A stretch of DNA of 64,000 bases, from the sequence record NC_015287.1; one strand, given 5' to 3'. The translations under genes and the position numbers were made by a program. Below, piece by piece: positions 1,952 through 43,058 of this stretch. The notes under the pieces are model-generated. The model did no database searches. It saw only the letters and a list, made by a program, of their open reading frames with translations, and was not told the DNA's origin. How positions within the stretch are numbered: position 1 is the stretch's first letter; each line of letters starts with the position of its first letter.

Positions 1952-2686
1952 ATGAAACTCATCACGGAAGAGATCGAAACCGCTAAGGTTCTTGTCGAAG
2001 AAAAAGACGGCAAGAAATCTATGTTCATTGAAGGTGTTTTCTTACAAGGAAACCTCAAGAACAGGAACGGTCGTTTCTATCCTGTTGAAACTCTCGAAAG
2101 AGAAGTCACAAGATACAACGAAGCTTTCGTTGGAAAAGGACGAGCTCTTGGTGAGTTAGGACACCCCGAAGGTCCTACTGTTAACCTAGACAGGGTATCC
2201 CACAAGATTGTAGACCTCCACAAAGAGGGAACTAATTTTGTAGGAAAAGCAAAGCTTTTAGAAACACCAATGGGTGTCATCGCCAAGAGTCTTATTGACG
2301 AAGGCGTACAACTTGGAGTTTCTTCTAGAGGCATGGGAAGTCTCAAAGACACTAGCGAAGGCTATAAAGTTGTTGGTGAGGACTTCATGCTTGCAACTGC
2401 AGCTGACATAGTTGCAGATCCTTCAGCACCAGACGCATTTGTGAATGGTATTATGGAGGGAGTTGATTGGATCTGGGAAGCTGGAATCCTAAAAGCAAAA
2501 GCATCTGAGATTAAAGTAATAGAAGAAAAAACTATTACTCATCCCAGCGTTGCAGTCGCTGAGCCTGAAAAGGCAGTGGAGGAAGTCATTGAGAAGACCC
2601 AAAAAACTATAAATAAATTAGTAGATCAAGGTCAACTTGACGAGAAGAAGTTGGAAATCTTCCAAAACTTCTTATCAAATCTTTGA
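1952..2686 (+). CDS. gp21: Prohead core protease
   Basis: MKLITE start, GELGHP and LGVSSRGMGSL catalytic motifs, ADPSAPDAFV. Confidence 0.95.
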   Translation: MKLITEEIETAKVLVEEKDGKKSMFIEGVFLQGNLKNRNGRFYPVETLEREVTRYNEAFVGKGRALGELGHPEGPTVNLDRVSHKIVDLHKEGTNFVGKAKLLETPMGVIAKSLIDEGVQLGVSSRGMGSLKDTSEGYKVVGEDFMLATAADIVADPSAPDAFVNGIMEGVDWIWEAGILKAKASEIKVIEEKTITHPSVAVAEPEKAVEEVIEKTQKTINKLVDQGQLDEKKLEIFQNFLSNL

Positions 2687-2746: not shown

Positions 2747-3835
2747 ATGTCCCGTGGAGATTTACAAGAAATGGATGTAAAGACACAGCAATCTAATACC
2801 GCTGTAAATAGTGGAGCAGCAAAAGGCGATCCTATGCCTACTACTCCTAATTACGTTCCTGATGGTCAAGGTTCCGTTGAAGATCTTGGTGGTCCTACGC
2901 CTGAGAACTCAAAGCCTGACGACAACAGTAACATGCTTAAAACGCCAACTGCGACTATTAAGCAAGTTAAAGACGTAATCACTAAAAACGCTGGTAAAGC
3001 TGATCCAATGCCAACTGCACCTAAGTATGCCGAAGAGGCAGAAGCCGACGAATCAAAAGAAGTTGTTGCTGAAGAGGAATCTACAGAAGCAACTGAGGAA
3101 ACAGTCGATCTAAACGCTGCCATCGAAGAAGATGTCAACGCACTTCTTTCTGGAGAAGACCTCTCAGAGGAATTCAAAGAAAAGGCTAAGGTGATTTTTG
3201 AGGCATCTATCAATGCTAAAATCACAGATATCGAGAATCAGTTAAACGAAGAGTATGAGAAAGCACTCAACGAACAGGTTGAGGAAATCAAAGTCGAACT
3301 CACTGAGAGAACTGACGCATACTTGGAGTACGTTGCCGATGAATGGATGAAGGAAAACGCTCTCGCAGTCGAAAGAGGAATCAAGACTGAGATGACAGAA
3401 TCATTCATGGAAGGCATGAAAAAGCTTTTTGAAGAACATTATGTAACTTTACCTGAAGACAAATATGATGTCCTAGAAAACATGGTGGACAAGCTTGATG
3501 AAATGGAGACGAAGCTCAACGAGCAGATAGAAAAGAACGTTGCACTCAACCAGAGACTTGGTGAGTCAACCGCTCAGACTGTCTTTAACAATGTTGCTGA
3601 GGGTCTTGCAGTTTCTCAGAAAGAGAAATTGAAAACTCTTGCAGAAAGTGTTGAGTTTGAAAGTGAAGAATCCTATCGTGGAAAGATCGAAACTCTGAAA
3701 GAATCTTATTTCGGACAGAAGAAGACCACATCCACAGCGTCCGCTCCTCAAGAATTGAAAGAAGAAGCAGAACACGTTGAGCCAGCTACTGGTGCAATGG
3801 CTGCTTATCTTGATGCACTTGGACGTATGAAATAG
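2747..3835 (+). CDS. gp22: Prohead scaffold protein
   Basis: Acidic coiled-coil with FKEKAKVIFEA and YLEYVADEW; immediately upstream of the major capsid gene. Confidence 0.93.
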   Translation: MSRGDLQEMDVKTQQSNTAVNSGAAKGDPMPTTPNYVPDGQGSVEDLGGPTPENSKPDDNSNMLKTPTATIKQVKDVITKNAGKADPMPTAPKYAEEAEADESKEVVAEEESTEATEETVDLNAAIEEDVNALLSGEDLSEEFKEKAKVIFEASINAKITDIENQLNEEYEKALNEQVEEIKVELTERTDAYLEYVADEWMKENALAVERGIKTEMTESFMEGMKKLFEEHYVTLPEDKYDVLENMVDKLDEMETKLNEQIEKNVALNQRLGESTAQTVFNNVAEGLAVSQKEKLKTLAESVEFESEESYRGKIETLKESYFGQKKTTSTASAPQELKEEAEHVEPATGAMAAYLDALGRMK

Positions 3836-3871: not shown

Positions 3872-5278
3872 ATGCAACAAAACATCAATTATCAACAACT
3901 CACTGAAAAGTGGGCTCCCCTTCTCGATCACGAAGGGTCAGATCCAATTAAAGACGCACATAGAAGAAACGTTACTGCGGTTCTTCTCGAAAACCAAGAG
4001 CAAATGCTCAGAGAAGAGAATGCTTTCCAGTCTTTGACTGAGGCATCTCCTACTAACTCCGCTGGAACTGGTGGATTTAGTGGTTCTGCTGCTGCAGCAG
4101 GTCCTGTTGCTGGTTTCGACCCTGTGTTGATTAGTCTTATCAGACGTGCAATGCCTAACTTGGTCGCATATGACCTTGCTGGTGTTCAACCAATGTCTGG
4201 TCCTACAGGACTTATCTTCGCAATGAGATCCAGATTCACTAATCAGAGTGGAACTGAGGCTCTCTTCGATGAACCAGATACAAGCTTCTCTGGACAGAAC
4301 TCCTCTCAGAACCTTACAGGTGGCATGACAGATGTTGCCGCTGGTTTCGGTACTACATCTTCTCCTAACGGAACAAACCCTGGCGTTCTTAACCCTGTTG
4401 GTTCCGCAACTACTACTGACTACTCTGTTGGTCAGGGTATGGTTACTGGAGAGGCTGAGGCATTAGGAGACGCTGCTGCTAACGCTTTCCAAGAGATGGC
4501 ATTCAGCATCGAGAAAGTTACTGTGACTGCGAAGTCCAGAGCACTCAAAGCTGAGTACAGTTTAGAATTGGCTCAAGACCTTAAGGCAATTCACGGATTA
4601 AACGCTGAGTCTGAACTCGCAAACATTCTCTCTACTGAGATTCTTGCTGAGATCAACCGCGAAGTTATCCGTACTATCTACAAGGTCGCAGAACAAGGTG
4701 CAACAATCAACACTGCAACTGCTGGAACATTCGACTTAGACACTGACTCCAACGGTCGTTGGTCAGTTGAGAAGTTCAAGGGACTTCTATTCCAGATCGA
4801 AAGAGATGCGAACCAAATCGCACAAAGAACTCGTCGCGGAAAGGGCAACGTGGTTCTCTGCTCTGCCGACGTTGCTTCAGCTCTTACAATGGCTGGAATC
4901 CTTGATTACACCCCTGCACTTAACGCTAACTTAAACGTTGACGACACTGGCAACACATTTGCTGGTACTCTTGCTGGTAAGTACAAAGTTTACATCGATC
5001 CTTTCGCTGCAAACAATGACGCTAATCAGTACTACGTTGTTGGTTACAAGGGTACTAACCCTTATGACGCTGGACTGTTCTACTGCCCTTACGTTCCTCT
5101 TCAGATGGTTCGTGCTGTGGGTCAGGACACCTTCCAACCAAAAATTGGCTTCAAGACTCGTTACGGAATCGTTGCAAACCCATTTGCCGAAGGTAACGTA
5201 TCTAACCAAGGACTTGGAAGACTTCTTTCCAACGCTAACCGCTACTACAGAAGAGTCAAGGTTGCAAACCTTATGTAA
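3872..5278 (+). CDS. gp23: Major capsid protein
   Basis: GVQPMSGPTGLIFAMR, KSRALKAEYS, YCPYVPLQM, FQPKIGFKTRYG; probable gp21 cleavage at LTE/A. Confidence 0.98.
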   Translation: MQQNINYQQLTEKWAPLLDHEGSDPIKDAHRRNVTAVLLENQEQMLREENAFQSLTEASPTNSAGTGGFSGSAAAAGPVAGFDPVLISLIRRAMPNLVAYDLAGVQPMSGPTGLIFAMRSRFTNQSGTEALFDEPDTSFSGQNSSQNLTGGMTDVAAGFGTTSSPNGTNPGVLNPVGSATTTDYSVGQGMVTGEAEALGDAAANAFQEMAFSIEKVTVTAKSRALKAEYSLELAQDLKAIHGLNAESELANILSTEILAEINREVIRTIYKVAEQGATINTATAGTFDLDTDSNGRWSVEKFKGLLFQIERDANQIAQRTRRGKGNVVLCSADVASALTMAGILDYTPALNANLNVDDTGNTFAGTLAGKYKVYIDPFAANNDANQYYVVGYKGTNPYDAGLFYCPYVPLQMVRAVGQDTFQPKIGFKTRYGIVANPFAEGNVSNQGLGRLLSNANRYYRRVKVANLM

Positions 5279-5301
5279 TTCGGATATTACAATCTTCACA
5301 G

Positions 5302-5328
5302 AGAGACCCGAAAGGGTCTCTTTTTTTT
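5302..5328 (+). terminator. Rho-independent terminator after gp23
   Basis: AGAGACCC-GAAA-GGGTCTCT stem followed by a T-run. Confidence 0.9.
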
Positions 5329-5363
5329 GTGCCTATATAGTAAGCACTATATTGTGTGAAATT

Positions 5364-5987
5364 ATGACACAACCAAACAGTAAGTGGAAGTGGATCGCTA
5401 TAGGCACTGTGGGTAGTCTCTTTGCAGTATCACATATCGGTATGATAGGTATGTTGAGTCAAAGAGGATCTAAGTTACCACAGATTAACTTACCTGTAGG
5501 TGACTATACCTCTTATAGAGCAGACGTAAGCGAAGAAGGATATCGTATCGACTATAAGGGTAATGACCCTACAGTGATGCGTGTGGAAAGGGATAGAAAT
5601 GTAAAAGGCGGTTTTCTGGGATTGGGTAACAATAAAATCAGAACCGTTGAGGAGTATACTATGGACGGAGCTCACCACCAAGGAGGATCGACATCCAACC
5701 CAAGATCTTGGCAAGACAACACCAACGGAGGAGGAGAGTCGGGAAAGCTCACTGCCCAACAAGTCGAGTGTATCGAGGCGGTCGGTGGTGGAAAGCAGAC
5801 TGGCAGAGTTGTTGGGACTAGTATTGGTACTGCTGCTGCCCCTGCCGTTGTTAATATTCCCTTTGTTGGGTGGCTTGCTGCTGGTTGGATCGCGATGTTC
5901 GGAGGAAACCAAGGAGCGGAAATAGGTGGTAACATGGCTTCTGAACTTGCAGATGCCTGTGAGGATCCCGAATTGTCAGATAAATAA
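5364..5987 (+). CDS. Membrane protein with C-terminal glycine zipper
   Basis: N-terminal hydrophobic segment; GxxxGxxxG helices at the C-terminus. The true start is the ATG at 5364, not 4938. Confidence 0.75.
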   Translation: MTQPNSKWKWIAIGTVGSLFAVSHIGMIGMLSQRGSKLPQINLPVGDYTSYRADVSEEGYRIDYKGNDPTVMRVERDRNVKGGFLGLGNNKIRTVEEYTMDGAHHQGGSTSNPRSWQDNTNGGGESGKLTAQQVECIEAVGGGKQTGRVVGTSIGTAAAPAVVNIPFVGWLAAGWIAMFGGNQGAEIGGNMASELADACEDPELSDK

Positions 5988-33766: not shown

Positions 33767-35148
33767 TTGAAACTATTGAAAATACCATCATCAAGAATCT
33801 TATCTGTAATGAGGAATATACTAGGAAGGTTCTTCCTTTCTTAAAACCAGATTACTTTGACAAAGCACATGAGAAGATAATTTTTGATGAGTGTGCCAAG
33901 TTTATTGTACAGTATGATAAATGTCCTACTATAGAGATTCTTTCTATTGAATGTGAGAAGAGGAAAGATATTAATGATGATACTTACAAAGAAATTCTAG
34001 ATTATCTCAAGCAAACAAGTCAGACTGAAGAGAACGTAGATGATTGGCTGATAGATACTACAGAGAAATGGTGTAAAGAAAGAGCAATCTATCTTGCACT
34101 GGTCGAAAGTATCTCTATTGCAGATGGACATGATATCAAGAAAGGTGTTGATGCTATCCCTGCTATCCTATCAGATGCACTTGCTGTTGGGTTTGATAAT
34201 CATGTTGGACACGATTACCTAGAAGACTATGAGGAGAGATTTGACTTCTACCACAAGAAGGAGGACAGAATCGAGTTTGACCTCGAATTTTTCAACAAGA
34301 TTACAAAGGGTGGCCTTCCAAATAAAACACTCAATATTGCTCTCGCTGGCACTGGTGTTGGTAAGTCTTTGTTTATGTGTCATGTCGCAAGCAGTGTGTT
34401 ACTCCAAGGCAAGAACGTATTATACATCACGCTTGAGATGGCTGAGGAGAAAATTGCTGAGAGAATTGATGCTAATCTTTTAAACATTCCTGTACAACAG
34501 TTGACGGATATTCCTCGTCAGATGTTTGAGAGTAAAGTTACTAAACTATCAGAGAAAACTCAAGGTAGTCTTATCATCAAAGAATATCCTACTGCTGCTG
34601 CACACTCAGGACATTTCAAAGGTTTGTTGAATGAACTTGCACTCAAGAAATCTTTTAAACCACATATCATTTTCATTGACTACTTAAATATATGTGCATC
34701 CTCTCGTTATAGAGCTGGTTCCAATGTCAACTCATATTCCTACATCAAAGCAATCGCTGAAGAACTTAGAGGTCTTGCAGTCGAAACAGATGTCCCTATT
34801 GTATCAGCGACTCAAACCACTCGTAGTGGGTATTCTAACAGTGACGTTGATCTTACAGATACCTCTGAGTCATTCGGTCTTCCCGCTACTGCCGACCTTA
34901 TGTTTGCTCTTATTTCTACAGAAGAATTAGAGGAAGTAAATCAGATCATGGTCAAACAGTTGAAGAATAGATACAATGATCTGAACAGAAACAAGAGATT
35001 TGTGATTGGTATTGATCGTTCAAAGATGAAACTATATGACTGTGACCAGAGTGCTCAGGATGATATAGTTGACAGTGGACAAGAAGAAGAGTATAATAAT
35101 GACGAATCTAAAAAGATTAAAAACAAGTTCGCAAAGTTGACATTCTAA
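33763..35148 (+). CDS. gp41: Replicative DnaB-like helicase
   Basis: AGTGVGKS, IFIDYL, SATQTTR, QLKNRY. Confidence 0.96.
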   Translation: MIETIENTIIKNLICNEEYTRKVLPFLKPDYFDKAHEKIIFDECAKFIVQYDKCPTIEILSIECEKRKDINDDTYKEILDYLKQTSQTEENVDDWLIDTTEKWCKERAIYLALVESISIADGHDIKKGVDAIPAILSDALAVGFDNHVGHDYLEDYEERFDFYHKKEDRIEFDLEFFNKITKGGLPNKTLNIALAGTGVGKSLFMCHVASSVLLQGKNVLYITLEMAEEKIAERIDANLLNIPVQQLTDIPRQMFESKVTKLSEKTQGSLIIKEYPTAAAHSGHFKGLLNELALKKSFKPHIIFIDYLNICASSRYRAGSNVNSYSYIKAIAEELRGLAVETDVPIVSATQTTRSGYSNSDVDLTDTSESFGLPATADLMFALISTEELEEVNQIMVKQLKNRYNDLNRNKRFVIGIDRSKMKLYDCDQSAQDDIVDSGQEEEYNNDESKKIKNKFAKLTF

Positions 35149-35552
35149 TGACTATTGATTTTAAAAGGTACGAAACATTCGTAGATGCCGTAACCTCTGA
35201 CGCTTCAAAGGACTTTGTTAATCTCGCTGACCGTATGGTTGAGTTGGATGGACAGGGTGCGAACATTGAAAGGCTTTTGACCTCTGCGGTTGGTATGTCC
35301 GCCGAAGCTGGTGAGTTCACTGAGATTGTAAAGAAGATGGTGTTTCAAGGAAAACCTTGGAACGGAGCAAACAAACATCATCTTATCACAGAACTGGGTG
35401 ATATCATGTGGTATGTAGCAAATGCTTGTATGGCATTGGATGTATCATTTGATGATGTAATCGCAACCAATGTTAAGAAACTGGAAAAGAGATATCCTGG
35501 CGGTAGTTTTGATGTATTCTATTCCGAGAATAGACAGGAGGGAGACCTCTAA
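35148..35552 (+). CDS. mazG: MazG-type nucleotide pyrophosphohydrolase
   Basis: EAGEF.E.VKK and ELGDIMWY. Confidence 0.92.
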   Translation: MTIDFKRYETFVDAVTSDASKDFVNLADRMVELDGQGANIERLLTSAVGMSAEAGEFTEIVKKMVFQGKPWNGANKHHLITELGDIMWYVANACMALDVSFDDVIATNVKKLEKRYPGGSFDVFYSENRQEGDL

Positions 35553-35555
35553 ATA
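35549..35555 (+). promoter_or_regulatory. Late promoter variant CTAAATA
   Basis: TAAATA core overlapping the mazG stop. Confidence 0.5.
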
Positions 35556-35568
35556 GTATCAAAAACTC

Positions 35569-36828
35569 ATGGCTAGATCTGCTGAAGAAGTATTAGAACT
35601 CAATCAGATTTTACAAGAGATAAACATTCCCGATAGGGATGTATCTGTCAAGGGTGCAACTTCTAAACAAGTTACCTATGTTGTAAAATCTAATGATAGA
35701 GATGGCACTAAAGCTGCCGTAGAGTCTTTGATATCTAGATTGGGTAGAGTATATAACGAACAAAGATCTATTAGTTCCATTCCTGTGTCCTGTGTGAGGA
35801 TGAGTGATGGAACTATTTTGACGTTTATATACAAACCAAAAACAGGTGGAATGTCAATGACAACATTGAACTCCTCCATCACAGAACTGTTTCCATGTAT
35901 TGCTTTTATGAATGGTATCAGTCCTAACTTGTCAGTCAGAGATTTTTATCAAGCAGTTAGAAACGCCAATAGCCCTTCTGGTGGATACTATCTCACATCA
36001 CAGGATGCACTTGCTGGAAAGAAATTTATAGATCAAGCGGAGACTGGTTCGTTCCAAACAAAAGTTACTAATGCAAAAAATATAACTAAGTGGTTGTTAT
36101 CTCATAATTCAAAACATCCTATCTCTCAATGTTACTGGGGATACCGAGCAAAACCAAGTGGTGTGGAGGGAAGTCATCCTGGCGATATTTTTATTCAGTA
36201 TAGAAATGGTGGTATGTTAGGTATTAGTTTGAAGGCTGGAACTGCCAAGTCTGCCGAACCCAAACTGAATACATATGTGAAACCTATCTTTGATTTCTTT
36301 GGTGAACAGAACAGATATAATGCAATCAAAGATAGATTGTGGCCACAGTATGAATCTATAGAAGGTATCGAAGCATCTGATAAAGCTTTTTGGGGAACAT
36401 CAAGGTTGGCAGTCAAGACCTTTGAGTTTGAAAAGGAGAACGAGGCAGAATATAATAGGTTGTATGATATAAATTTGGGTATTGTAAGAGAAGAATTAAT
36501 CAATCTCTTCAATGGTAATTTTACCATGGCTAAAAAGTACATCACTCAGAAGATTGCATACTCTGGTTTTAGAACTCCAGCAATAACAATCAAAGCAACT
36601 GAGACTGATGCTAGTTTGGATAATACTAATGAAAAACTCTCTGCGGCCTTGTCTGCTGTTACAAGTGTAAGGGCATCAGTAGGTAGTGGTAAACAGGATT
36701 TTAATATTATGTTGAGTGATGGTTCAGTCATGTCAATGGCTTTTACTACTAGAACTAATAAAGTAGGTGCAATGCACAAATTAGGTCAGTTCCAAAACCT
36801 TGCTGTTAAATTTAACAAAATATCTTAA
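35569..36828 (+). CDS. Hypothetical, possible PD-(D/E)xK nuclease
   Basis: HPGDIFIQ...GISLK pattern. Confidence 0.55.
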   Translation: MARSAEEVLELNQILQEINIPDRDVSVKGATSKQVTYVVKSNDRDGTKAAVESLISRLGRVYNEQRSISSIPVSCVRMSDGTILTFIYKPKTGGMSMTTLNSSITELFPCIAFMNGISPNLSVRDFYQAVRNANSPSGGYYLTSQDALAGKKFIDQAETGSFQTKVTNAKNITKWLLSHNSKHPISQCYWGYRAKPSGVEGSHPGDIFIQYRNGGMLGISLKAGTAKSAEPKLNTYVKPIFDFFGEQNRYNAIKDRLWPQYESIEGIEASDKAFWGTSRLAVKTFEFEKENEAEYNRLYDINLGIVREELINLFNGNFTMAKKYITQKIAYSGFRTPAITIKATETDASLDNTNEKLSAALSAVTSVRASVGSGKQDFNIMLSDGSVMSMAFTTRTNKVGAMHKLGQFQNLAVKFNKIS

Positions 36829-36832
36829 TAGG

Positions 36833-36839
36833 ATAAATA
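36833..36839 (+). promoter_or_regulatory. Late promoter ATAAATA
   Basis: Intergenic, about 25 nt upstream of the GTG start. Confidence 0.6.
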
Positions 36840-36864
36840 AAACTGTAATCGTCTACTGAATTTT

Positions 36865-38247
36865 GTGAAATCCTTCGGTCAATTTTTAACAGAAGCTGTC
36901 AAGACTGCCGCCTCCACTGAAGCCAAACTAAAGGGCTTGAAGGGAGATGGTCATGGCGGATGGTATGATGCAAAGGGTAATTTTGTAGCTAAGACTGTTA
37001 ACGGTAAACTTCAATACACAGGAGGAAAAGGTGCGGCCGAGACTGAAGATCCTAAATCTACTAAGGTGGCCACGCCTGAGAAACCTACTGCAAAGAAGAA
37101 AGCACCTGTTGCAACTCCCTCTGCTACCAAGTCCCAACAACCAGCAGACCCTGCCCCTGATGCTAGGAAGGCTCCAGAGCCAGGTGATGCACAAACACAG
37201 TCGGCGGAAGTTATGGGGATGCCTACGAGTGAGGGTGCGGTAATTGTATTTGGTAGATTCAACCCACCAACAGTAGGACACGAAAAGTTATTAAAGAAAG
37301 CTCAGTCAGAGGCAAGCAGATTGAAGTATGACTTGAAGATATATCCAAGTCGTAGTGTAGATGCTAAGAAGAATCCTCTACAGCCTGGTGCGAAGATAGA
37401 ATATATGAGGAAGATGTTCCCTGATTATGGGGATAGTATCAAGGATGATCCTAATGGAAGAACCATCTTTGATGTTCTTGGTGCTTGTTTCAATCTGGGA
37501 TATAAAGGAGTAACAATAGTTGTAGGACAGGATAGACTCTCTGAGTTCCAGAGTCTTGCACAGAAATATAATGGTGACTTGTATGATTTTGAAGATCTTC
37601 AAGTCATATCCGCTGGTGCAAGAGACCCAGACGCAGAGGGAATTGAGGGTATGTCTGCATCTAAGATGAGAGATGCTGCTGCCAAAGATGACTTTAAAGC
37701 ATTTGCAAAGGGTATCCCCAACTTAGGTAACATGGAGAAGAAGAATCTCTTCAACCTTCTCAAGAAGTCAATGGGAGTAACCCAAGATCAACTTGCAAAT
37801 GGTTCTAAAAGAATCAGACCCGCTCTAGAAACATGGCAGTATGCACCTAAGTTAGATCCATTTGGACTAAGGATTGCATATCTGAAAGAAGAGTGTTTCA
37901 AAGTAGGAACTTTAGTAGAGAATGTAAATACTGGAGTGAGAGGTAGAATTATTAGGAGAGGTGCGAATCATGTTATCGTACAAACTCCAGAGTCTACCAT
38001 GTTTAAGTCATGGTTGAGAGACCTGACAGAGGCATATGATGTAGGCACTGATGAGTATAGACAATACATGCAGAGAATGACACCAGGCCAAGGTGATAAG
38101 AAGTGGAATAATGATCCAATTATCAAACCAATTACCACTGGATCTTACTATGATGGTAAGAAGGTCAAGAATCCCAATGACCCTGCTAGTGGACCTGGCA
38201 CAAAGTATAATGATACATCTATACCTTATAAGGTTGGAAAGGGATAA
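36865..38247 (+). CDS. HIGH-motif nucleotidyltransferase (cytidylyl/NMNAT-like) with extended N-terminus
   Basis: FGRFNPPTVGH, VVGQDR, MSASKMR; N-terminus MKSFGQFLTEA. Confidence 0.8.
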   Translation: MKSFGQFLTEAVKTAASTEAKLKGLKGDGHGGWYDAKGNFVAKTVNGKLQYTGGKGAAETEDPKSTKVATPEKPTAKKKAPVATPSATKSQQPADPAPDARKAPEPGDAQTQSAEVMGMPTSEGAVIVFGRFNPPTVGHEKLLKKAQSEASRLKYDLKIYPSRSVDAKKNPLQPGAKIEYMRKMFPDYGDSIKDDPNGRTIFDVLGACFNLGYKGVTIVVGQDRLSEFQSLAQKYNGDLYDFEDLQVISAGARDPDAEGIEGMSASKMRDAAAKDDFKAFAKGIPNLGNMEKKNLFNLLKKSMGVTQDQLANGSKRIRPALETWQYAPKLDPFGLRIAYLKEECFKVGTLVENVNTGVRGRIIRRGANHVIVQTPESTMFKSWLRDLTEAYDVGTDEYRQYMQRMTPGQGDKKWNNDPIIKPITTGSYYDGKKVKNPNDPASGPGTKYNDTSIPYKVGKG

Positions 38248-38250
38248 ATA
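38244..38250 (+). promoter_or_regulatory. Late promoter ATAAATA
   Basis: At the gene end, upstream of the 38287 ORF. Confidence 0.55.
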
Positions 38251-38286
38251 AGGATAGATCAAAGAATCTCTAATTTTTTTACTATC

Positions 38287-39120
38287 ATGACTGACGACTC
38301 AAAACTGGTTGACGCTTATAAGTCAATGTATGAACACCATCAAAAAGATGCTGACGGTAAAGTTATCGAGCATGATGATAAAGAACAGTTAGATGAACTA
38401 GCACCTCTAGCTGCTATCCCAGCGGTGATGAAGGGAGTTGGTACTGCTATGAAGGTTGCATCTGCTGTTAGTACAGCTAAAGATGTGGTAGGAGGAATTG
38501 CGAATAAAGTTAGAGGAAAAGGTCAATTAAATAAACAAGCGCAAGAGTCTGTAGAATTGCATGATGCCGAGGGTAATTTGACTCATGAGATCACTGATGT
38601 TGTCACTCCAGAACCATTAGGTAATCCAGATGAGAACTTGGCAGATAGACTTTGGGATCAGGTTGCAGCAAACTTGACAACTCTTGGAGAGATGGCTGGT
38701 GTTAGATACCAAGTATCTCCTGTAGAAGAATTACAAGAGAAGAAAAAGAAGAAGGGTAAGAAATTAGATCCAGTTGGAAAAGAAGATGAGGACATTGATA
38801 ATGATGGTGATGTAGATGACTCTGATTCATACCTTAAGAAGCGTCGTGAGGCAATCGGAAAGGCAATGAAGAAAGAAGAGGTAGAGGTAGAGACTGAACT
38901 TGATGAGAGAGCATGTTGGGACTCCCATAAGAAGGTGGGTATGAAGATGAAGGGTGGTAAACTCGTTAACGATTGCCGTCCTAAGAATGAAAGTTTCAAC
39001 GTCAAGAGTCCAGTCGTATTCTCAAAACCAGAAGAGAAAGTAGAAGAGACTATCTCTGAGGAGACAATCGAAAAACACGCAAGTTCCATTCTTAAAGCAC
39101 ACAAGTCCATCCAAAAGTAG
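38287..39120 (+). CDS. Charged low-complexity protein with EF-hand-like loop (candidate internal head protein)
   Basis: DEDIDNDGDVDDSD loop; several L-x-E sites. Confidence 0.6.
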   Translation: MTDDSKLVDAYKSMYEHHQKDADGKVIEHDDKEQLDELAPLAAIPAVMKGVGTAMKVASAVSTAKDVVGGIANKVRGKGQLNKQAQESVELHDAEGNLTHEITDVVTPEPLGNPDENLADRLWDQVAANLTTLGEMAGVRYQVSPVEELQEKKKKKGKKLDPVGKEDEDIDNDGDVDDSDSYLKKRREAIGKAMKKEEVEVETELDERACWDSHKKVGMKMKGGKLVNDCRPKNESFNVKSPVVFSKPEEKVEETISEETIEKHASSILKAHKSIQK

Positions 39121-39127
39121 GATAAAC

Positions 39128-40246
39128 ATGAAGAGCTTTGAACAATTTGAATATGAACAGTCTCTTGTGGACGAGGGACTAAGAGATGACATCTCCTTTG
39201 TTGGGGCAAATGTCCGCAGCAGATTTCAGAAAGGCAAACGTGCTCCAGAAAGAAAAATTTCTAATAAAGGGGTCCCAACCCAAGATGCAGTCAAGTCCAC
39301 CAACATCGGAAAACCGAGCTCGTCATCGCCTAATCGCCCTTCTGAAATAGGCAGTGATCCAGGTCCTGCTCCTAATATTCCTACAAGGCCTGGGAGAAGA
39401 TCAGATGGATCTAAAAAGACTGGTGTAGCGGCAACAATAGAAAGAAATAAAGAAAGAGCAACGGCCTATGCAAAGTCTGAAAGAGGTAAAAAAATAGGTA
39501 GAACAGTAGGGGGAGCTCTCGGTGCTGCAAGGACTTATAAACCTGATGGAGAGGCGGTAGATACTGGTGCATCTGGAATGGGAACCCAGATGAGACATCT
39601 TCGTGGTATTGGTGCGGCTGCCATGGACGGTGCTATTAAGGGATATCAAAATAGAACTAAAGATGCTAAAAAGGATGGCAGAAACATTTCTGGTTCTGGA
39701 GCACAGAAAGGTGGAACTACTGCTAGTCGTGGATTATTCGGGTTAGTTTCCGACTTTGCCAAAGACAAAATTAAGAAGAAAGTTGGTATTGATAGTAAGA
39801 AGACAGCTGGTGGTAAAACAATTACTGGTGATGTTGAATCAAAGTATAGAAAAGGTCAACAAGAAAGACAAAAGCAAAGAGACCTAGACAAAGAAAGGAT
39901 GACACCAAAATCTGAGACTCAAGCGAGTAAAGATGCAACAAGAGCTACTAAAAATAAACCTACCGAAAAGTCTCCAGAAAGGATTGCTCAAGACAAAAAA
40001 GTTAATAAGGCTCTAGGTGGTGATGCTAAAGGTGTAAAGGCACAAAGAGAGATTGATAAACAAATAGAGACAGCTCGGAAAGATACTGCTGCTAGGGACC
40101 AAGTTAAGAAAGATTTTGAGTCCTCTTATGGAAAGGGAGCATCTCTCAAGTCTGACGAGAAAAAACCTTCCGAGTCTGAGTCTAAGGTGAAGAGTTTAGT
40201 CAAAGGTGCAGAATCAGAATCAAAGGCAAGAAAAAAAATTAAATGA
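39128..40246 (+). CDS. Lys/Gly-rich low-complexity protein (candidate internal head protein)
   Basis: N-terminus MKSFEQFEYE; may continue into the next ORF through an A8 run. Confidence 0.6.
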   Translation: MKSFEQFEYEQSLVDEGLRDDISFVGANVRSRFQKGKRAPERKISNKGVPTQDAVKSTNIGKPSSSSPNRPSEIGSDPGPAPNIPTRPGRRSDGSKKTGVAATIERNKERATAYAKSERGKKIGRTVGGALGAARTYKPDGEAVDTGASGMGTQMRHLRGIGAAAMDGAIKGYQNRTKDAKKDGRNISGSGAQKGGTTASRGLFGLVSDFAKDKIKKKVGIDSKKTAGGKTITGDVESKYRKGQQERQKQRDLDKERMTPKSETQASKDATRATKNKPTEKSPERIAQDKKVNKALGGDAKGVKAQREIDKQIETARKDTAARDQVKKDFESSYGKGASLKSDEKKPSESESKVKSLVKGAESESKARKKIK

Positions 40247-40802
40247 TGCTCCTCCAAAAAAAGGTGGTGTGGAAGGCTTGATGTCTGCGATGAAGAAACA
40301 GGAAGAAAACGAAAAGAAAAAAGAGACTAAAACTGTCAAGGCAACAACAGTGCCTAAGAAACCAAAAGAAGAAAAACCAAAAGAACAGAAACTCAAGAGA
40401 CCTAATATAAGAAGTTATAAAGGTGATCTTGAGGGATATGAGAAAGCACGAGCAGCATACAATGCCCAAAAACCTGAGAACAAAACTAAGGTAGGTAACC
40501 AAGGAAGACCTAAGAAGGAAGTCAAGGAGGCCACTGGACGCATTGCAATGATGAGAGCTGCCAAAGAACAAGGAAAAACTATAAAGACTAGAACTTATAG
40601 TCAGATGAAGAAGGATGAGGCAAGGGAAGCCGCAATAAAAAGAATACAGAATGAACAATTCTCACACTGGCGTGAAGAATTCCTATGGGAAGTTGATAAA
40701 AAGTATCCAGATAAGGTCAAAGAAATCAAACCCATGAGTGGTAAAAACACTATCATCATCAACCCAGAGGATGAATCCGCTAAATATAAGAGAGGTTATT
40801 AA
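40206..40802 (+). CDS. Lys/Glu-rich protein, start uncertain
   Basis: FSHWREEF and KNTIIINP motifs; +1 frame relative to the upstream ORF. Confidence 0.55.
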   Translation: MQNQNQRQEKKLNDAPPKKGGVEGLMSAMKKQEENEKKKETKTVKATTVPKKPKEEKPKEQKLKRPNIRSYKGDLEGYEKARAAYNAQKPENKTKVGNQGRPKKEVKEATGRIAMMRAAKEQGKTIKTRTYSQMKKDEAREAAIKRIQNEQFSHWREEFLWEVDKKYPDKVKEIKPMSGKNTIIINPEDESAKYKRGY

Positions 40803-40808
40803 GGAATC

Positions 40809-41081
40809 ATGTTAACTAACATAAAAGGAGCTCAAGCAGCTTGCGGCGTTAATGCTGCAAACGCCTCTACATTCGGAAGTGCGACAGTGGTTCGTCTTTG
40901 CAACAATGGATCAACTGCAAGATTGGTTACTGTGATCGATTCTGTTGGTGGATCAACCACAATCGGAACATTCACAATGCCACCAAACACTGTTGAGTTT
41001 GTAGAGAAAAAATCAACCGAAGCAATCTTCGCAGCAAACGCTGAAGTGTTAGGTTCAGCAGCTGGATATACAATAGGATGA
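40809..41081 (+). CDS. Small beta-rich hypothetical (likely virion)
   Basis: SD AAGGA; ATVVRL.N and F.EK...E.IFA. Confidence 0.7.
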   Translation: MLTNIKGAQAACGVNAANASTFGSATVVRLCNNGSTARLVTVIDSVGGSTTIGTFTMPPNTVEFVEKKSTEAIFAANAEVLGSAAGYTIG

Positions 41082-41329
41082 ATATTCTAAAGACTCTAGG
41101 TGAAAAGTTCCGTCTTGCAAGGAAGGAACCGAAGGAGTTTACTTTAGGATATGATTTATACGCAGAGATGCCAGATCACATGATGAAGAACCCACCTTCT
41201 AGATGTGACTGGTTTGAGGAATCAATATATGCAGTTCCAGTGCTGCCAACAGAGACACCAATTCATCAGAAAATGTATGAATTGTCTTCAAAAAATCTTA
41301 ACATTGGAGGTTCGGAGACCCTGACATAA
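41078..41329 (+). CDS. Hypothetical protein
   Basis: 83-aa ORF coupled to the upstream gene. Confidence 0.65.
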   Translation: MNILKTLGEKFRLARKEPKEFTLGYDLYAEMPDHMMKNPPSRCDWFEESIYAVPVLPTETPIHQKMYELSSKNLNIGGSETLT

Positions 41330-41386
41330 GTAGTGGTTTTTACCTAGTCTGTTATACTAAATATTAGCGGTATAAGGACGATAAAA

Positions 41387-41557
41387 ATGTCACACTATAC
41401 GGTCGGATATCACGACGGTATTCAAAATTCACACGAAATCTGCGAGTATGCTAACAACGCATATGAAGCAGTAAAGAACGCACAAGAGGATGTTCCTTAT
41501 CTAAAAGGGCATCCTCTTTCTATTGATTACGCACTGATCACGGAGGAAGAACAATGA
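41387..41557 (+). CDS. Small conserved cyanophage protein (56 aa, MSHYTVGYHD...)
   Basis: Not in the ORF track; EICEYA..AYEA...A.EDVPYL. Confidence 0.75.
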   Translation: MSHYTVGYHDGIQNSHEICEYANNAYEAVKNAQEDVPYLKGHPLSIDYALITEEEQ

Positions 41558-41972: not shown

Positions 41973-42475
41973 TGAAACAATTCAACACAATCATTCTAGA
42001 TATCACTATCGGAATACTCGACTTCCTATACCGCAACAGACCTTTCCAAAGGTTCTGGGTATTGGAAGTCATTGCCAGAGCACCTTACTTCGCATTTATC
42101 AGTGTGTTACATTTCCGTGAAAGTCTTGGACTTAGGGGAGATGACCATATATACTTGATGAAAGAACACTTCTATCAAGCTCTAAATGAAACAGAACATC
42201 TGGAGGAAATGGAACTTAGGGAAGGAAATAAGTATTGGATCGACCGCTTCTTTGCCAAGCATCTTGTTCTGGTTTATTATTGGATCATGGTTGGGTACTA
42301 TCTCATTGATCCTGTGGACGCTTATGACATCAACATGAAGATTGAGAGTCACGCATACGAAACTTATGTCAAGTATAGTGCATGGCATCCAGAAGATAAA
42401 AAAATTATGGAGATTGCCAACGACGAATTAGAACATGCTAGGGAATTGCAACATGCGATGACGCTAATAGGTTGA
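41972..42475 (+). CDS. ptox: Plastoquinol terminal oxidase
   Basis: Di-iron motifs LEVIARAPY, NETEH, ESHAYETY, DELEH. Confidence 0.93.
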   Translation: MKQFNTIILDITIGILDFLYRNRPFQRFWVLEVIARAPYFAFISVLHFRESLGLRGDDHIYLMKEHFYQALNETEHLEEMELREGNKYWIDRFFAKHLVLVYYWIMVGYYLIDPVDAYDINMKIESHAYETYVKYSAWHPEDKKIMEIANDELEHARELQHAMTLIG

Positions 42476-42514
42476 TACGACTACATAGTATATACTTATC
42501 AATATTATTAGTCT

Positions 42515-42814
42515 ATGTTATCAACTCAATATCGTTTACGCTTAGAAGCAATTTGTAAAGACATCGCTTCTGGTACAGATGTATCAATAGAAGATATGAT
42601 CTGGGCACAAAAATTAGCAAAGGCTAATACATCTGCAAGAGGTATGTTACAAACAGCAAGACGTATGAGTACGAATCCTAACGATTCTTTTCTTAATCAC
42701 TTGAATTTAGGAGACCCCGATTCAAGTAATCACAAAAGGGGTTTCAGTGGACCAGAAGAAATTGTAGATTGGTTCCACCAAGAAAGATCTGATGACTGGA
42801 GACAACGTGACTGA
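42515..42814 (+). CDS. Conserved hypothetical
   Basis: MLSTQYRLRLE..C, DDWRQRD. Confidence 0.75.
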   Translation: MLSTQYRLRLEAICKDIASGTDVSIEDMIWAQKLAKANTSARGMLQTARRMSTNPNDSFLNHLNLGDPDSSNHKRGFSGPEEIVDWFHQERSDDWRQRD

Positions 42815-43058
42815 ATATGAAAGACGAGCAGAAGACCCATGCTGGCAACACAGACAAGAGTGCATTGCCATGTTCACCCTCGATTCACACAACACTTCTT
42901 ACATATATCGAAGAGAAGATAACACATATTACTGGCAACATTGTAGAAAAAAGGCGGAAGACGATATCTTCCTAGACGCTGATGGTTTACAGTTGGATTT
43001 GTTTGGTAAACCAATCCTAAGTAAAGAATATATTATGAAAGAAATATTATGTCTGTAG
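42807..43058 (+). CDS. Hypothetical protein
   Basis: GTG start overlapping the upstream gene. Confidence 0.6.
   Translation: MTEYERRAEDPCWQHRQECIAMFTLDSHNTSYIYRREDNTYYWQHCRKKAEDDIFLDADGLQLDLFGKPILSKEYIMKEILCL

Follow-up and report, generated by a model that had tools for sequence, protein, structure and literature searches.

The internal proteins of coliphage T4 known as IPI, IPII and IPIII bear a capsid-targeting sequence at their N-terminus (Mullaney and Black 1996, as reviewed in PMC9026906). In the IPIII tag, residues 4 and 7 are the main determinants of targeting, and residues 8 and 10 those of processing; the T4 ADP-ribosyltransferase Alt has a propeptide of 7 residues and is trimmed at both ends, and the maturation of gp23 removes a propeptide of 65 residues (PMC9026906). 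The window analysed here is a stretch of 64,000 nucleotides from the T4-like cyanomyovirus Synechococcus phage S-SSM7 (bases 124001-188000 of NC_015287 / GU071098; complete genome 232,878 bp). Within it, gene SSSM7_194 specifies a predicted nucleotidyltransferase whose first ten residues resemble the T4 tag and end in a putative cleavage site for the prohead protease gp21. We put the probability that this protein is packaged by means of the tag, with cleavage, at roughly 0.65.

SSSM7_194 is the S-SSM7 member of T4-like gene cluster 190 (T4-GC190), a core gene of the oceanic cyanomyoviruses, a group that ranks with the most abundant viruses on Earth. Carriage in the virion and a role in nicotinamide adenine dinucleotide (NAD+) metabolism have already been proposed for these proteins (PMC9602691, PMC10665884, PMC12801897). 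No paper linking a capsid-targeting tag or a gp21 site with cyanophages was found in the literature searched, and a mechanism of capsid targeting and gp21 cleavage for T4-GC190 appears to be new.

The gene and its N-terminal tag

Numbering the window so that its base 1 is genome base 124001, the portal gene is followed by the head genes (gp21, gp22 and gp23), the replication genes, and then nrdA and the tail genes. SSSM7_194 is placed after gp41 (helicase), mazG and one hypothetical gene. Its GTG is the earliest possible start downstream of an in-frame stop codon lying 8 codons upstream. The record annotates the product as "cytidyltransferase", T4-like gene cluster 190; it matches phrog_395 ('cytidyltransferase', E 1.7e-103), is basic (isoelectric point, pI, 9.4) and belongs to a family of 4074 representative clusters. 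The features that bear on the tag are:

36865..38247 (+), coding sequence of SSSM7_194 (T4-GC190), 460 aa, GTG start, tagged HIGH-type nucleotidyltransferase (predicted)
36865..36894 (+), capsid-targeting-like propeptide, residues 1-10, (fM)KSFGQFLTE; predicted gp21 cut after Glu10, predicted mature N-terminus AVKTAAS
1952..2686 (+), gp21 prohead protease, predicted to cut after Glu10 (PF03420 Peptidase_S77, E 1e-36)
2747..3835 (+), gp22 scaffolding core protein, on which the tag is expected to dock (PF25623 T4_CASP, E 1.4e-80)
4031..4045 (+), SLTE/A in S-SSM7 gp23 (Glu57), from global pairwise alignment with the T4 gp23 site FLTE/A

The T4 genes ipI, ipII and ipIII were translated from the T4 record (NC_000866) for comparison. 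IPII and IPIII both begin MKTYQEFIAE/A and IPI begins MKTFKEF, while the N-terminus of SSSM7_194 reads MKSFGQFLTE/AVKT. Over positions 1-11, SSSM7_194 and IPII/IPIII share five identical residues (M1, K2, F7, E10 and A11) and four conservative ones (S/T3, F/Y4, Q/E6 and L/I8), so that the alignment claimed in the sequence-only reading of this DNA was borne out against the T4 sequences themselves. All four positions known as determinants in T4 are kept (F4, F7, L8 and E10); the targeting pair is F4/F7, as in IPI, where IPII and IPIII have Y4/F7.

The tag is conserved among cyanophage orthologues. It reads MKSFFQFLSE/A in S-SM2, MKSFSQFLTE/T in P-SSM2, MKKFSAFLTE/A in S-RIM2, MKKFSAFLNE/A in S-SM1, MKKFSAFLSE/A in Syn9, MKNFSSFLTE/A in S-CREM2 and MKSFLQFLKE/A in S-SCSM1; the motif is kept in these seven phages despite overall identities of about 40-58%, and the linker behind it varies freely. 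The 120 closest metagenomic relatives retain KSFGQF(L/I)xEAVKT. In a sample of 149 cluster representatives, selected by whole-protein homology and hence independently of the tag, the tag core occurs within the first 22 residues of 41%, or of 61% if a variant one residue shorter is allowed, compared with 0.9% and 2.3% for internal control windows. Within S-SSM7 the strict motif was found at one of 4359 candidate starts (open reading frames, ORFs, of at least 50 aa in the whole genome), that of SSSM7_194; no second fully tagged protein was present among them. Conservation, uniqueness in the genome, the portability described below and the unbiased family sample together place the resemblance to the T4 tag beyond chance.

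An orphan ORF two genes downstream, SSSM7_196 (39128-40246, +), begins MKSFEQFEYEQ. It keeps F4, F7 and E10 and has no aliphatic residue at position 8, and was not counted as tagged. Its product is very basic (pI 10.1, 23% Lys plus Arg), of low complexity and without a family match, and shows no similarity to gp185 of Syn9; it could represent an internal protein that has decayed or diverged.

Predicted cleavage site, protease and scaffold

Positions 8-10 of SSSM7_194 hold the (L/I)-x-E motif of gp21 (L8-T9-E10/A11). Residues 58-72 of T4 gp23 are AFGSFLTEAEIGGDH, with Glu65 and Ala66 at the maturation site, and the FLTE/A of SSSM7_194 comprises the same five residues. The gp23 of S-SSM7 itself has SLTE/A at the aligned position. 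The sequence-only reading that the tag ends in a gp21-type L-x-E site is thus upheld as far as the residues go, and a gp21 cleavage site in the tag is supported. S-SSM7 gp21 shares 79 identical residues with its T4 counterpart, including the GELxHP and GVSSRGxGS stretches. By analogy with T4, gp22 would be the protein on which the targeting sequence docks.

Portability of the tag

A degenerate DNA pattern encoding M-K-(S/T)-F-x-x-F-(L/I)-x-E-A was scanned against IMG/VR, with a codon-permuted pattern of identical composition as control. The tag pattern matches at least 120 loci and the permuted one 11, none of which is at a convincing ORF start and two of which carry T4-like genes. Among the tag matches listed, 123 of 124 have an in-frame stop codon no more than 30 codons upstream (median 6), which places the tag at ORF starts. 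When the tag was removed from 119 of these ORFs, the remainders fell into 34 unrelated clusters; the family of SSSM7_194 accounts for 58 of the tagged ORFs, and among the remaining clusters are the DUF5661/phrog_727 family, small basic proteins, DUF6267 proteins, DPBB lytic transglycosylases and numerous orphans. Of the 120 listed loci, each of which spans at most 15 kb, 93 carry one or more T4-like core genes. The decapeptide behaves like an N-terminal signal that is portable, and it occurs mostly in T4-like phages.

In three of the small tagged ORFs (L025 3736-4149, L047 1211-1858 and L098 1085-1591) the tag is soon followed by a common Y-H-G-T / Y-T-S stretch. These ORFs have no Pfam match and might be enzymes.

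Detection of orthologues in virions

Purified S-SM1 particles were analysed by Sullivan et al. 2010 (PMC3037559). In their supplementary Table 8, T4-GC190 is listed with 25 peptide counts, and gp20, gp22 and gp6 with 18, 22 and 25, respectively. This detection is the reason for the remark "similar to S-SM1 protein" on SSSM7_194 in the S-SSM7 record. Orthologues were subsequently found in the virions of S-SCSM1 (ORF91, there called NMNAT; PMC9602691) and S-CREM2 (ORF154; PMC10665884), and both reports state that such proteins have been detected repeatedly and are perhaps carried into the host. The virion proteins of S-SM1, S-SCSM1 and S-CREM2 are 40-58% identical to SSSM7_194 and all three have the tag. 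These papers report the detection and speculate about delivery; no description of a targeting sequence or cleavage site was found in them. Neither N-terminal nor ejection data for any cyanophage orthologue were found in the literature searched.

For S-PM2 and Syn9 virions, the table of PMC3037559 gives T4-GC190 as not detected. The presence of tagged orthologues in virions, together with the non-detection of the untagged form of S-PM2, fits tag-dependent loading. Packaging of SSSM7_194 by means of its tag is well supported, though indirectly. The sequence-only reading had the enzyme both packaged and ejected with the DNA; mass spectrometry of the three relatives and the portability of the tag lend indirect support to the first part, and the second draws on the analogy with T4.

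The next gene, SSSM7_195 (38287-39120, +), specifies an acidic DPVGKEDEDIDNDGD...RREAIGKAM module which is 55% identical over 66 aa to SSM1_191 of S-SM1 (T4-GC1454), a protein seen in S-SM1 virions, and in S-SCSM1 the genes on either side of the enzyme orthologue bear virion-protein annotations. It may be, then, that the enzyme gene belongs to a small late cluster of genes for virion proteins.

Proposed route into the head and the cell

We propose that SSSM7_194 is probably transcribed late and that during prohead assembly the protein would be held to the gp22/gp21 scaffolding core by docking through Phe4 and Phe7 of the decapeptide. Gp21 would then cut after Leu8-Thr9-Glu10, and the mature enzyme of about 49 kDa, starting AVKTAAS, would stay in the DNA-filled head. 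By analogy with the T4 internal proteins and Alt, the enzyme might be ejected into the cell with the DNA, a step to which we give an even chance, and it would in that case be present from the first moment of infection.

As judged from the genome, SSSM7_194 shows every feature of the T4 internal-protein system that can be sought in sequence. Like IPI, IPII and IPIII it has a tag of about ten residues, M-K-(S/T)-(F/Y)-x-x-F-(L/I)-x-E/A, in which positions 4 and 7 are aromatic and 8-10 form a gp21 site; its phage has homologous gp21 and gp22, and its expression may likewise be late, as a motif suggests. Unlike them, its cargo is a 49-kDa predicted enzyme and not a small basic protein; it has no sequence relation to them beyond the tag, and its host is a cyanobacterium. 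What it would share with Alt is the concept of an enzyme that is preloaded in the head, undergoes trimming by gp21 and enters along with the DNA. The two differ in fold and chemistry, no homology of SSSM7_194 to ADP-ribosyltransferases was found, and the Alt propeptide has 7 residues.

Domains, fold and substrate

A model of SSSM7_194 was built with AlphaFold (AF2) from 72 sequences; its mean predicted local distance difference test score (pLDDT) is 80, rising above 95 in the catalytic domain. Behind the tag, the following features were recognized:

36895..37029 (+), residues 11-55, small helix and beta module containing GDGHGGWYD (pLDDT ~82-94)
37030..37224 (+), residues 56-120, linker modelled as disordered, with a high content of Ala, Pro, Lys and Thr (pLDDT 40-57)
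37225..37800 (+), residues 121-312, Rossmann-fold nucleotidyltransferase domain (pLDDT >95)
37270-37281 (+), T-x-G-H motif, T136-V-G-H139, HIGH-type signature
37654-37671 (+), S-x-S-x-x-R motif, S264-A-S-K-M-R269, ISxxxxR-type signature
37882..38034 (+), residues 340-390, SH3-like beta-barrel domain (pLDDT ~95; Foldseek matches to the MscS beta-domain)
38023-38034 (+), residues 387-390, second LTE/A, with which the C-terminal barrel ends; of about 22 cyanophage-type orthologues, 18 keep [LIVM]xE here
38035..38244 (+), residues 391-460, conserved VGTDEYR...MTPGQ stretch, then a disordered tail (AlphaFold model and orthologue alignment)

The Pro/Ala/Lys linker and HIGH-family domain of the sequence-only reading were thus recovered, as a disordered segment and a Rossmann domain with the TVGH and SASKMR motifs. 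The module at residues 11-55 is conserved in many tagged orthologues and matches the N-terminus of phrog_3561. No [LI]xE site occurs in the linker. A few homologues match MSSS SH3 and TRAM families in the C-terminal barrel. Since Alt is trimmed at both ends, C-terminal trimming of SSSM7_194 at the second LTE/A, a site which recalls the Alt arrangement, is possible but speculative.

A stretch resembling VGTDEYR..MTPGQ comes after the tag of a separate ORF in locus L085. An internal "fossil tag" at residues 378-390 of SSSM7_194 was considered and set aside, as the Lys and Trp there are conserved parts of the folded barrel.

In the catalytic domain P134, P135 and H139 are invariant and G130, R131, T136, G138, S264, S266 and R269 are at least 90% conserved. 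Its Foldseek matches (probability 1.0, E 4e-5 to 3e-3, target-normalised template-modelling (TM) scores of 0.5-0.7, 12-17% identity) are to PPAT (TM 0.65-0.70), NadD (~0.55), human NMNAT (~0.49) and also FAD synthetase. PF01467 (CTP_transf_like) is matched by 65 of 72 homologues (best E 2.4e-9), and membership of this superfamily is firm at family level, though sub-threshold for the single sequence. SSSM7_194 is accordingly predicted to be a HIGH-type nucleotidyltransferase closest to PPAT, NadD and NMNAT. It has the Rossmann nucleotidyltransferase fold and the (T/H)xGH and ISxxxxR-type motifs of CoaD (PPAT), NadD and NMNAT, but differs from them in its low identity and in the added N-terminal module, linker and C-terminal SH3-like barrel.

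Other searches gave little. The single protein had no Pfam match at E 0.01; neither the protein nor a 72-sequence profile found anything meaningful among solved structures (PDB); NCBIfam gave only sub-threshold matches over the first motif; and a BFVD fold search found only other unnamed viral "cytidyltransferase-like" proteins. The substrate is therefore not assignable from sequence. Among the NMNAT family models, TIGR01526 scored 15.4 bits against a cut-off of 341 and phrog_3462 matched with E 0.005 over 60 residues, in the first motif only; no biochemical report of adenylyl transfer to nicotinamide mononucleotide (NMN) or nicotinic acid mononucleotide (NaMN) by this enzyme family was found in the literature searched. 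The name "NMNAT" of recent papers is not established by these searches. The modelled fold does not decide the substrate, and NMN or NaMN, one candidate among several, seems rather unlikely to be the one used.

DUF6267 (T4-GC71) recurs beside the enzyme. In S-SM1, Syn9, S-RIM2 and P-HM2 its gene lies directly upstream of that of the enzyme; in S-PM2 and phrog_455 the two are fused; and in several metagenomic contigs DUF6267 bears the tag itself. This suggests that the two act jointly. It was located at L006 47295-48269, L128 2272-3234, L005 1791-3570, L147 1-1055 and L012 4695-5942, and at 42031-42996 of the S-SSM7 genome, outside the window. DUF6267 has a KWDGAP motif like the KxDG of ligases and no match among solved structures; its description as ligase-like comes only from this KWDG motif, read by eye. 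Long members of the SSSM7_194 family (900-1200 aa; P0151, P0163, P0170, P0233 and others), often behind a tag-like N-terminus, add PAP2 phosphatase, AAA_33/zeta-like P-loop kinase, Pol-beta-type nucleotidyltransferase or DUF5824 domains.

Two S-SSM7 genes outside the window concern NAD by their product or by their name. SSSM7_258 (genome 204978-205739) specifies a genuine NAD synthase (PF02540, E 1.7e-45) and lies in a sugar-modification cluster. SSSM7_239 (genome 195003-195440) is annotated 'NAD synthetase' and actually has a SegE-type GIY-YIG endonuclease domain (E 2e-56).

Late-promoter motif

The published consensus for cyanomyovirus late promoters is NATAAATA (PMC2984593). One match precedes the gene:

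36832..36839 (+), GATAAATA, late-promoter consensus match 26 nt upstream of the SSSM7_194 GTG (motif match only)

The late promoter of the sequence-only reading is thus present as a motif, and late transcription of SSSM7_194 may be suggested from it. Similar motifs stand upstream of the orthologues in S-CREM2 (TATAAATA) and S-SCSM1 (AATAAATA), so that a NATAAATA-type upstream motif is common to all three genes. SSSM7_195 has a GATAAATA of its own at 38243-38250, overlapping the SSSM7_194 stop codon. Eleven of the 15 ATAAATA copies in the window stand in the sense orientation with a start codon 13-50 nt downstream; they include those of gp22, gp3 (ATAAATA at 5980-5986), an S-layer-domain virion protein gene, SSSM7_194 and the next gene.

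Over-representation of ATAAATA was considered and rejected (15 copies found, 15.5 expected), and only the positions of the copies are informative. When 35000-41500 was scanned for promoters and terminators, they were no more numerous than in shuffled sequence. At 35069-35097 (+), inside the 3' end of gp41 and about 50 nt before mazG, there is a perfect sigma-70 consensus (TTGACA, 17 nt, TATAAT), and at 36428-36456, inside SSSM7_193, a second match (11/12).

Elsewhere in the window, SSSM7_149 (5016-5987, +), annotated as hypothetical, overlaps the final 260 nt of gp23 in another frame.

Weighing the explanations

Several observations weigh against packaging by the tag followed by delivery. The orthologue of P-HM2 is an untagged catalytic domain of 183 aa and that of S-PM2 is likewise untagged, its catalytic domain being fused behind a DUF6267 segment; the enzyme is therefore useful without packaging, and, as the tag is not universal in the family, pre-loading would be a lineage-specific addition to an enzyme which also works when made in the cell. 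Particle evidence comes from the relatives S-SM1, S-SCSM1 and S-CREM2, and the cut is a prediction from sequence. In PMC3037559, the untagged neighbours T4-GC1453, 1454 and 1455 are also listed in S-SM1 virions, so that the tag is not the sole route into the particle; the S-PM2 and Syn9 proteomes reported there were less sensitive and also missed gp21, gp4 and gp5, and their negatives carry little weight. The authors of the S-SCSM1 and S-CREM2 studies caution that abundant late proteins may co-purify in virion mass spectrometry (PMC9602691, PMC10665884). SSSM7_194 alone scores 15.8 bits against PF01467, below the gathering threshold of 21, the baseline for T4-like content of IMG/VR contigs consists of the 11 control loci only, and ATAAATA is no commoner in the window than expected.

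Some of these points would suit an ordinary intracellular auxiliary metabolic enzyme, in which the motif is a conserved helix of the family and detection in virions reflects late abundance and co-purification, a possibility raised by the S-SCSM1 and S-CREM2 authors themselves. The untagged orthologues of P-HM2 and S-PM2, the position of the gene beside replication genes (gp41 and mazG) and not in the head module, and a looser motif directly before the first beta strand in many family members are all consistent with it. A family helix is, however, hard to square with the same decapeptide at the head of 33 other unrelated clusters among the matches listed, mostly on T4-like contigs, or with its ending in the exact gp23 cleavage site and keeping the four positions singled out by T4 genetics. 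Nor does co-purification sit easily with detection in the preparations of three independent laboratories, at counts comparable to those of gp20 and gp22, when the adjacent untagged DUF6267 gene of S-SM1 is absent from the available part of the virion table. We regard this explanation as distinctly improbable. It is also improbable that the protein is packaged by its tag but works only in the particle or its assembly, for example as a core or DNA-condensing component, and is not delivered as an active enzyme. Its basic character (pI 9.4), long disordered linker and tail would suit such a role, and fragments of gp22 and gp21 are likewise listed in S-SM1 virions in PMC3037559; but the near-invariance of the catalytic motifs over thousands of clusters points to selection on catalysis, the head has no obvious supply of nucleoside triphosphates, and the T4 proteins with the same type of tag are ejected (PMC9026906).

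A more specific proposal, made in the sequence-only reading and, in similar form, in PMC9602691 and PMC12801897, is that the enzyme is an NMN/NaMN adenylyltransferase whose ejection would restore NAD+ in the face of NAD+-depleting defences. The structural matches include NadD and NMNAT, NadR-type NMNAT models match weakly over the first motif, and the true NAD synthase of S-SSM7 would complete a path from NaMN through nicotinic acid adenine dinucleotide (NaAD) to NAD+. SSSM7_194 would then be a phage-encoded step of NAD+ synthesis comparable to the phage NAD+ reconstitution pathways (Osterman et al. 2024, as cited in PMC12801897). It shows no detectable specific relationship to the enzymes of those pathways (phrog_3462, E 0.005 over 60 residues), and a partner Nampt or ADPR-pyrophosphokinase was not seen. 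Nor are those enzymes known to be packaged. The best structural matches are moreover to PPAT and not to NMNAT, all at 12-17% identity, and TIGR01526 falls far short of its cut-off. With neither Nampt nor NadV seen among the annotated S-SSM7 genes listed, the phage alone could not recycle nicotinamide released by a defence; the NAD synthase gene sits in a sugar-modification cluster, and the fusion partners (KxDG-like DUF6267, PAP2 phosphatase, P-loop kinase and Pol-beta-type nucleotidyltransferase) point to other chemistry. This proposal is accordingly judged unlikely. Loading through the tag with gp21 cleavage remains the reading we prefer.

Implications

T4-GC190 has been reported in virions since 2010, and no explanation of its route into them was found in the searched literature. 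A T4-type tag with a gp21 site would provide a concrete mechanism for its presence there, and the probable entry of the enzyme with the DNA narrows the assays worth doing. The tag marks at least 34 unrelated protein families on T4-like contigs and so offers a cheap listing of candidate ejected proteins of uncultured marine phages; in the laboratory it would be a natural label for loading foreign proteins into cyanophage heads.

A wider and somewhat doubtful generalization would make the decapeptide a loading code used generally by marine T4-like phages, under which any protein with M-K-(S/T)-F-x-x-F-(L/I)-x-E/A enters the head and is then ejected. If this were true, ejected proteins could be predicted from sequence by their tag alone, and the nucleotidyltransferase, the sole fully tagged protein of S-SSM7, would be the most widespread cargo. 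The enzyme would then meet a host target or metabolite at the very outset of infection; it might, for instance, rebuild NAD+ or another adenylylated cofactor, or work on nucleic-acid ends together with the ligase-like DUF6267 protein.

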